Part shown: in pieces, positions 51,922 to 52,349 of the stretch
Layout: every line of letters starts with the position of its first letter
How positions within the stretch are numbered: position 1 is the first letter of the stretch
Assembly (NCBI GenBank): GCA_977017575.1
Contig: CDRNVI010000182.1
Span: 1-64,000, forward strand
Origin: Paramoeba atlantica
Lineage: Eukaryota > Protista > Discosea
Reading direction: 5' to 3'
Length of the DNA stretch: 64,000 bases
The notes under the pieces: model-generated
The model's input: the letters and a program-made list of their open reading frames with translations, nothing else
The model's database searches: none
What the model was told of the DNA's origin: nothing
Made by a program: the position numbers and the translations under genes

Positions 51922-52349
51922 TTTTTTTTTCTTTTTTTTTGAAACAAACTTTATTTAATTAGTAGTTTTTAATCTAAACCATTTGAATTATATTAAATTA
52001 TGTTTGTTTTTAACCTTTTAATAAGAAATGAAGTTTTAAACTTCAATTTAGTTTAGTTATTCTTTATATTGAACTTTAGAACTTCTACAAGTTTAGAATA
52101 AAGAATGTATATCAAAAAAAAAAATAATTTAAAGTTCTTTCCAAAGAAATTTATTCTCAACTTTTTAGCAAATAGAGTTGAAATGTAATTTGTTCTGATT
52201 TTCACACTTTTTTAAAAGTTCTTCATTTTAATTAAATCACTCTATAACACTAAAAAAATTTTTTATAATATTAAAAAAACTAAAATTTGAACTTACACCC
52301 TTAAGATTAAACATAATCAAATTTACAACTAAACTATAAGCATTAATTT
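51922..52349 (-). mobile_element. Full-length hypermutated copy of the 17360-17782 SINE-like element
   Basis: Colinear end to end; first 70 nt show 24 differences (14 C>T, 9 G>A, 1 G>T) and no indels; A-rich tail. Confidence 0.92.

Follow-up and report, generated by a model that had tools for sequence, protein, structure and literature searches.

Known systems of cytosine-directed mutation in repeats

Decay of CpG dinucleotides through deamination of 5-methylcytosine (5mC) is familiar from vertebrates and many protists; plant transposons also show CHG and CHH decay under RNA-directed methylation, and plant RdDM places sharp all-context marks on SINEs. RIP is CpA-biased in Neurospora, and AID prefers WRC motifs. 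RIP is premeiotic, fungus-specific and dependent on RID or DIM-2, and mutagenic silencing of repeats has been described as specific to fungi (PMC7882544). RID appears confined to fungi (PMC12344493). A gradual, vegetative and repeat-focused C>T mutation in Zymoseptoria tritici depends on Dim2 and is thereby tied to a cytosine methyltransferase; more than 95 per cent of the changes are C>T, with more than 98 per cent at CpA, and CpG is spared (PMC8016269). Among protists, Naegleria gruberi carries all-context (CX) 5mC on its repeats with DNMT1 enzymes only, and repeat methylation in Acanthamoeba, the amoebozoan studied, is almost restricted to CG (PMC12344493). APOBEC editing is single-stranded, clustered and motif-bound, and 5mC deaminates about 2–40 times faster than C in duplex DNA according to tabulated rates (PMC3978516). 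Our search of the literature, which had incomplete coverage, found no report of mutagenic repeat silencing in amoebae, and a literature search on DNA cytosine methyltransferases in Paramoeba returned nothing. Intrastrain variation of 1.3–5.7 per cent in the 18S rRNA genes of Paramoeba/Neoparamoeba is a known problem for species delimitation (PMC12079164).

Here we analyze a 64,000-nucleotide stretch of DNA from Paramoeba atlantica (the window), which starts with CCCTAAA telomere repeats and contains two rDNA units, polyubiquitin, a broken Hsp70 gene and transposon relics (Table 1). A SINE located in one of the 28S genes has undergone mutation that is like RIP in its outcome and like Dim2-type mitotic mutation in its working, and that fails the RIP features tested beyond the spectrum and the product index.

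Table 1. Features of the window discussed in the text; fractions are changed sites over sites compared.
Feature	Position	Strand	Remarks
Telomere-truncated rDNA unit	570–5899	-	Singleton C>T: non-CpG 37/1475, CpG 8/255; context-relaxed erosion
Hsp70 pseudogene	15788–18277		Arginine codons decaying at CpG
Young reference SINE copy in Hsp70 pseudogene	17360–17784	+	15-bp target duplication, 17345–17359 / 17785–17799
Reverse-transcriptase (LINE-like) relic	23600–27460		Between haplotypes: CpG 37/134, non-CpG 15/1690, transversions 0; CpG-first regime
DDE_Tnp_1_7 (piggyBac-type) transposase relic pair	34554–34855, 38589–38871		Non-CpG 27/100, intermediate dose
Outer flank in common with L006 (non-rDNA comparator)	49602–50784		Non-CpG 24/371, CpG 6/12
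28S 3' part beside SINE	51217–51918	-	Post-split: non-CpG 3/98 in core, 9/113 further out; CpG 0/58
Whole insert in 28S gene	51913–57745		Bounded by duplicated CTTCGA (51913–51918, 57740–57745)
Heavily eroded tRNA-headed SINE with A-tail	51922–52349	-	One end of the 5.8-kb insert in 28S rDNA
AT-rich spacer	52350–52533		GC 11 per cent; 4/18 surviving C/G differ from sister copy
18-bp satellite	52534–55143		About 145 units
Intron-containing orphan cargo gene	exons 55821–55961, 56031–56420, 56627–57613	+	
Rest of insert-bearing rDNA unit (28S 5' part, 5.8S, 18S)	57740–63864	-	Light C>T/G>A, CpG and non-CpG, including conserved positions

A young and an eroded copy of one SINE

Self-comparison of the window recovers only one other full copy of the SINE, located in the Hsp70 pseudogene. 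This copy has intact Pol III A and B boxes, no ORF, an A-tail of 18 A, a target duplication and a polymorphic insertion (L001 has the element, whereas haplotypes L002 and L004 have an empty site), as a tRNA-derived SINE should. Because of the empty sites and the intact Pol III boxes, the GC-rich Hsp70 copy is the ancestral form, close to an active master copy; an AT-rich family ancestor, from which the Hsp70 copy would have been derived, is ruled out on the same grounds. The copy differs from its L001 allele at three sites, all C/T or G/A and two of them at CpG. The L001 allele (L001 11287–11778) has a duplicated 3' end (the last ~65 nt and a second A-tail) within the same target duplication. 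Words of the sequence are also present in another study and under another organism label; a pattern search of JGI metagenomes gave no match, and no further copies were found in loci L004, L005, L007 and L008. The family consensus accordingly comprises two young alleles and two eroded copies, and loci L001–L006, which probably stem from the culture that also gave the window, are to be read as further haplotypes and not as independent populations. The Hsp70 sequence of the window is matched at 97–99 per cent in the long-read assembly ERZ24900291, and a relative at 84 per cent groups with a protein from Paramoeba aestuarina. The region of the pseudogene is bracketed by two dispersed 5S rRNA genes (14728–14846 and 23346–23464) in inverted orientation and with common flanks.

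The copy in the 28S gene has a GC content of 18 per cent, no remaining CpG, and altered Pol III boxes where those of the young copy are intact. As the preliminary description stated, it aligns with the young copy over its full length; the alignment contains 42 C>T and 41 G>A changes (42 counting the terminal base), so that 52 per cent of 161 G/C sites are changed (about 0.72 hits per site). Three transversions (two G>T and one C>A) are the only other substitutions, C>T/G>A making up 83 of 86, and none of 245 A/T sites is changed (Fisher P = 2e-43; upper 95 per cent bound 1.2 per cent). Our recount of the first 70 nt agrees with the earlier figure of 23 C>T/G>A among 24 differences (14 C>T, nine G>A of which eight are internal and one is the terminal base, and one G>T). 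The reported lack of indels is correct for these 70 nt; over the full length, there are a few 1-nt length differences in homopolymer runs.

With strands pooled, changes affect 13/16 CpG, 20/37 CpC, 28/60 CpT and 20/45 CpA sites, and 20/35 CHG and 48/107 CHH sites; the least-changed context is ApC (9/34; P = 0.005). Changes are equally frequent on the two strands (P = 0.2), and a runs test shows them to be interleaved (P = 0.32); 68 of the 81 context-scored changes lie outside CpG, which is incompatible with confinement to CpG. The change is thus directional, double-stranded and context-relaxed, as had been proposed. Since no CpG survives in the eroded copy, its CpG sites are saturated and carry no information on relative rate.

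Erosion since the split from a sister copy

A search with the last exon of the cargo gene retrieved one protein, encoded in locus L006. This locus carries the insert of the window at an identical 28S nucleotide, and its junction letters and outer flank also agree with those of the window. The two eroded SINEs have 79 C>T/G>A changes and three transversions in common. Private C>T/G>A changes number seven in the window and nine in L006, and one further difference, a T>A, is found at a homopolymer edge; per lineage, C>T thus amounts to about 10 per cent, against a single other change in 415 columns. By the time of the split, the SINE had received about 0.67 hits per site, to which each lineage has since added about 0.10; hence about 87 per cent of its load is older than the split. 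None of the 16 private changes falls at an intact CpG, and 16 of the 82 surviving non-CpG C/G (19.5 per cent) have changed since the split. Because both copies acquired private changes while in place, mutation continued in situ, on chromosomal DNA and gradually; this conclusion applies to the private changes, the bulk of the load being older.

Neighboring segments have changed at different rates over the same interval. The spacer resembles the SINE (4/18 surviving C/G changed), whereas the non-CpG sites of the adjacent 28S core (3/98, or 3 per cent; P = 4e-4 versus SINE) and of the outer flank (24/371, or 6.5 per cent; P = 8e-4 versus SINE) have changed less; the 5' part of the cargo gene has 12/288 changed. 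The SINE rate is therefore three to six times that of the flank and the 28S core, provided that divergence time is equal across adjoining segments, an assumption that gene conversion can break. Over the residence time of the SINE, the measured 28S rate predicts several changes in the 28S core, and almost none are seen; therefore, either conversion has refreshed the core or the insert came in at a later time. In neither lineage are post-split events coordinated by strand (57 and 85 events; P = 0.71 and 0.22), and overall TpC is the most frequently changed context (68/1042, versus 8/418 for GpC). A figure of 22 per cent for an S/P-rich repeat is alignment-sensitive and is given little weight, and three-way polarity counts that place T>C on outgroup branches are ambiguous and were excluded as rates.

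A second retroposon family, in which a T-tract is followed by GGTGACTG..., has diverged 3' ends at 48690, 49630 and 50995. The copy of this family at 50975 occupies a different position in L006 (4820).

C-to-T change across the window

The altered zone extends past the SINE through the spacer and the satellite to about 55143. The sharp boundary that had been noted on the 28S side is real, in that the 28S core (51640–51921) keeps its 17 CpG and follows the Rfam consensus; the altered zone is nevertheless wider than the SINE to which it had been limited. In the satellite, C>T/G>A accounts for 164 of the 168 differences between units and the GC-richest one, only 1 of 1692 A/T cells is changed, and the number of changes per unit has a Poisson-like distribution (mean 0.49, variance 0.39). 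Erosion reaches 10 per cent in the core units and 85 per cent in the four distal edge units, and the edge units are eroded in both copies of the insert, which indicates that the core has been renewed by expansion. The 18-bp unit is quasi-palindromic, and the array of the window compares with about 50 units in L006 (about 6780–7680).

Between the rRNA sequences of the two rDNA units there are 94 transitions and five transversions, with 74 of the differences outside CpG. In alignments judged by eye, the Rfam consensus agrees with the C/G form in 17 of the 19 18S cases that are informative, and a few of the differences between units are compensatory and do not represent decay. In both units (3790–5899 and 61759–63864), C>T/G>A changes have reached highly conserved positions of the 18S gene, and the rDNA external spacer has 6/24 sites changed. 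The telomere repeats (1–570) fuse directly inside the 28S gene, so that this unit ends several hundred bases short of the insert site; on contig ctg4009l, the unit beside the same neighboring DNA is complete and bears the insert.

In the LINE relic and the Hsp70 pseudogene, a second regime is seen, in which CpG sites change first. Between the Hsp70 pseudogene and its sister haplotype L001, 11 of 12 differences are at CpG, and the changes in the pseudogene affect 21/91 CpG and 10/555 non-CpG sites. The ratio of CpG to non-CpG rates is about 1.3 in the telomeric rDNA unit, 3 and 11 in other units and 31 in the LINE, the CpG component elsewhere being 13–31 fold. Differences between the two transposase relics are mostly in one direction, and young haplotypes differ by 40 changes, with no transversions, in about 10 kb. 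The dose is graded, from the three allelic changes of the young SINE through 2–3 per cent in rDNA, 10 per cent in the satellite core and 27 per cent in the transposase pair to 52 per cent in the SINE, 85 per cent at the satellite edge and a cargo gene with GC3 near 0–10 per cent. Decay outside the SINE had been thought to be restricted to CpG, a view that does not hold, as the satellite, both rDNA units, the transposase pair and the flank all share the non-CpG C>T/G>A change at a lower dose. The related suggestion of a separate process receives some support, in that the CpG and non-CpG components vary independently. Long CpG deserts (observed/expected near 0) cover the transposon relics at 28500–38000 and 40000–50700, and an AT-rich 193-bp tandem repeat is found at 30306–30891.

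Comparison with known systems and candidate mechanisms

As in fungal RIP, dense C:G>T:A change affects both strands of repeats with almost nothing else, leaving AT-rich end products. Unlike in RIP, the host is an amoebozoan, CpA (44 per cent) is not preferred over CpC (54 per cent) or CpT (47 per cent), and events accumulate singly and uncoordinated, also reaching rDNA at its 2–3 per cent dose. By published cut-offs (product index above 1.15, substrate index at most 0.75; PMC7882544), the eroded SINE qualifies on the product index (TpA/ApT, 1.19) and fails on the substrate index (0.83). The Poisson-like satellite load and the private changes in both copies do not fit episodic, strand-coordinated bursts, and RIP itself is rejected for lack of a CpA preference and of strand-coordinated clusters. 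Recognition of duplicated sequence as such may be reflected in the faster change of SINE, spacer and satellite relative to the flank, although the flank and the Hsp70 pseudogene are also changed.

The closest match in behavior is the Dim2-dependent mitotic mutation of Zymoseptoria (PMC8016269), from which this locus differs by its involvement of all contexts, its strong CpG component and an enzyme link that is here putative. AID and APOBEC enzymes share with it the C>U chemistry and a weak tendency toward a pyrimidine before C; however, instead of clustered, motif-bound change on one strand of retro-copied sequence, the strands are equal, changes are unclustered and DNA other than retroelements is affected. 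The WRC preference of AID is opposite to the low ApC rate, and AID was discarded for that reason. Transcription-linked deamination of one strand was discarded because the strands are equal. A UV signature was also considered and rejected (GpCpT 8/12 versus ApCpT 2/19; doublets not in excess). Like 5mC decay at CpG, the process is slow, strand-symmetric and repeat-enriched, with a dose that rises with age (vegetative descent being assumed), and the CpG-first regime of the LINE and the Hsp70 pseudogene fits such decay. Unlike usual 5mC decay, it changes non-CpG sites at least 50-fold above all A/T-site change, far beyond the usual transition excess. CX methylation in Naegleria is a protist precedent for a mark that targets repeats and would give such a spectrum; what is described for Naegleria and Acanthamoeba is methylation, and what is observed here is mutational erosion (PMC12344493).

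Given the observed direction, spectrum, strand symmetry, gradual accumulation in place and local rate contrast, we favor, with the chances about evenly balanced, gradual and repeat-focused C-to-T mutation via putative all-context 5mC with poor T:G repair. A continuous cytosine-directed process would affect repeated or silent sequence in the double-stranded DNA of the chromosomes, converting C:G to T:A site by site, irrespective of strand and context and at a rate far above that of other substitutions, with a faster CpG-only component alongside in transposon relics. The SINE would have landed in, or been captured by, an AT-rich, gene-carrying insert living in 28S rDNA and have eroded there over a period roughly seven times as long as the time since the copies in the window and L006 split. 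The clean 28S flank would reflect a lower local rate and probable refreshment from functional units, or copying of the insert into a fresh unit. The 13–31 fold CpG component suggests cytosine methylation in the Paramoeba genome. The lesion would be 5mC in all contexts on repeats, made by a putative DNMT1/DNMT3-type enzyme, deaminated either spontaneously or by the enzyme itself and fixed as C-to-T because T:G mismatches are poorly repaired; to this enzymatic chain we assign a middling probability. As 5mC deaminates only about 2–40 times faster than C (PMC3978516), a ratio of 50–100 or more also needs missing repair or enzymatic catalysis. The uncoupling of CpG and non-CpG components (from 1.3 in the telomeric rDNA to 31 in the LINE) is not simply explained by one methyltransferase.

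The same uncoupling is among the points that speak for a dedicated, hypothetical mutator (a deaminating methyltransferase-like protein or a double-stranded DNA cytosine deaminase) that would be guided to repeats and act as a continuous genome defense, a convergent and mitotic counterpart of RIP. Such a mutator would also account for the specificity (one change other than C>T in the SINE pair and one in the A/T cells of the satellite), for repeats evolving faster than their flanks and for the slight preference among contexts (low ApC in the SINE, TpC highest after the split). Yet clustering and strand coordination are absent, the motif is weak and inconsistent across data sets, and rDNA and an apparently selected gene are affected too. 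We therefore consider this mutator possible but unlikely, and likewise doubtful that Paramoeba-like amoebae independently evolved an always-on, repeat-guided enzymatic C-to-T mutator separate from CpG methylation. If neither mark nor mutator existed, C would deaminate to uracil, with uracil repair missing or excluded from compact chromatin. The involvement of all contexts and both strands, the dominance of transitions even between young haplotypes, the changes in the rDNA external spacer and the similar duplex deamination rates of C and 5mC (PMC3978516) agree with this scenario. It is improbable, however, given that the seemingly unselected outer flank changed three-fold more slowly than the SINE 1.2 kb away (P = 8e-4) and that the strong CpG component would still require methylation. 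Its corollary, that unselected and unconverted DNA drifts to about 5–10 per cent GC while selection and gene conversion hold genes and rRNA, seems similarly improbable, host genes retaining GC3 of 0.3–0.5.

A single burst before entry into the 28S gene had been the initial interpretation. As true RIP or as APOBEC-type cDNA editing of the SINE or insert, it would explain the large common load, the intact CpGs right up to the junction and the product index. Yet 16 transitions are private to copies that both already sat in the 28S site, strands are equal and interleaved without CpA bias, the substrate index misses its cut-off (PMC7882544), the satellite and spacer are also affected, and RID appears confined to fungi (PMC12344493). 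The single pre-insertion burst is hence largely refuted and has very little probability left. Practically negligible is the reading as ordinary AT-biased mutation with age, wrong polarity or an assembly artifact, in favor of which we can name general AT richness only. Ordinary bias with age, an alternative raised at the outset, is refuted for the eroded SINE by 83 C>T/G>A changes against none at A/T sites; wrong polarity conflicts with a young copy that is polymorphic and GC-rich and with polarizable rDNA differences that favor C/G as the conserved state by 17:2; and an assembly from a different pipeline has the sister copy with the same 79 changes.

The locus thus documents, in a non-fungal eukaryote, a context-relaxed C>T process that exceeds other substitutions by a factor of at least 50 and is seen under way in the comparison of two copies. 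With one young reference copy and two eroded ones at hand, the SINE can serve directly as a reporter in methylome and mutation-accumulation tests. Erosion of conserved rRNA positions is a possible and testable cause of the intrastrain 18S variation of Paramoeba (PMC12079164). A dedicated mutator, if it exists, would be the first RIP-like mutagenic genome defense outside fungi and a cause of the high intragenomic 18S variation in Paramoeba; even unrepaired 5mC decay and nothing else would be an extreme variant worth describing.

Organization of the 28S insert

The insert is 5.8 kb long, AT-rich and gene-carrying, and its junctions are identical in L006 (L006 6138–10358). Its junctions, given for the rRNA strand, are AAGCGC-TCGAAG at the 5' side and A-tail-GCA-TCGAAG at the 3' side, and the sequences may represent a target duplication of about 12 nt with an altered 3' copy, compatible with priming on the A-tail of the SINE. 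The cargo gene lies antisense to the SINE, an arrangement in which its introns would survive in a retro-copied read-through transcript.

Exon-by-exon searches gave no Pfam match for the cargo gene and no relatives beyond the sister copy in L006; homolog searches with one cargo exon and with a satellite ORF also gave no match, and since these queries are short, absence is not implied. GC3 of the cargo gene is 0–0.11, compared to 0.3–0.5 in host genes, as would be expected of a gene long exposed to C>T pressure. The exon at 56031–56420 is open in the window and has a TGG>TGA stop in L006. At codon positions 1 and 2, 5/189 C/G are changed, less than in the SINE, which suggests selection. A motif located just past the 3' end of the 28S gene (ATATACTCAACCC..AAGTAAAATT, 50889–50912) is repeated in the spacer of the insert at 52478–52501, hinting that part of the insert may derive from rDNA-flanking DNA.
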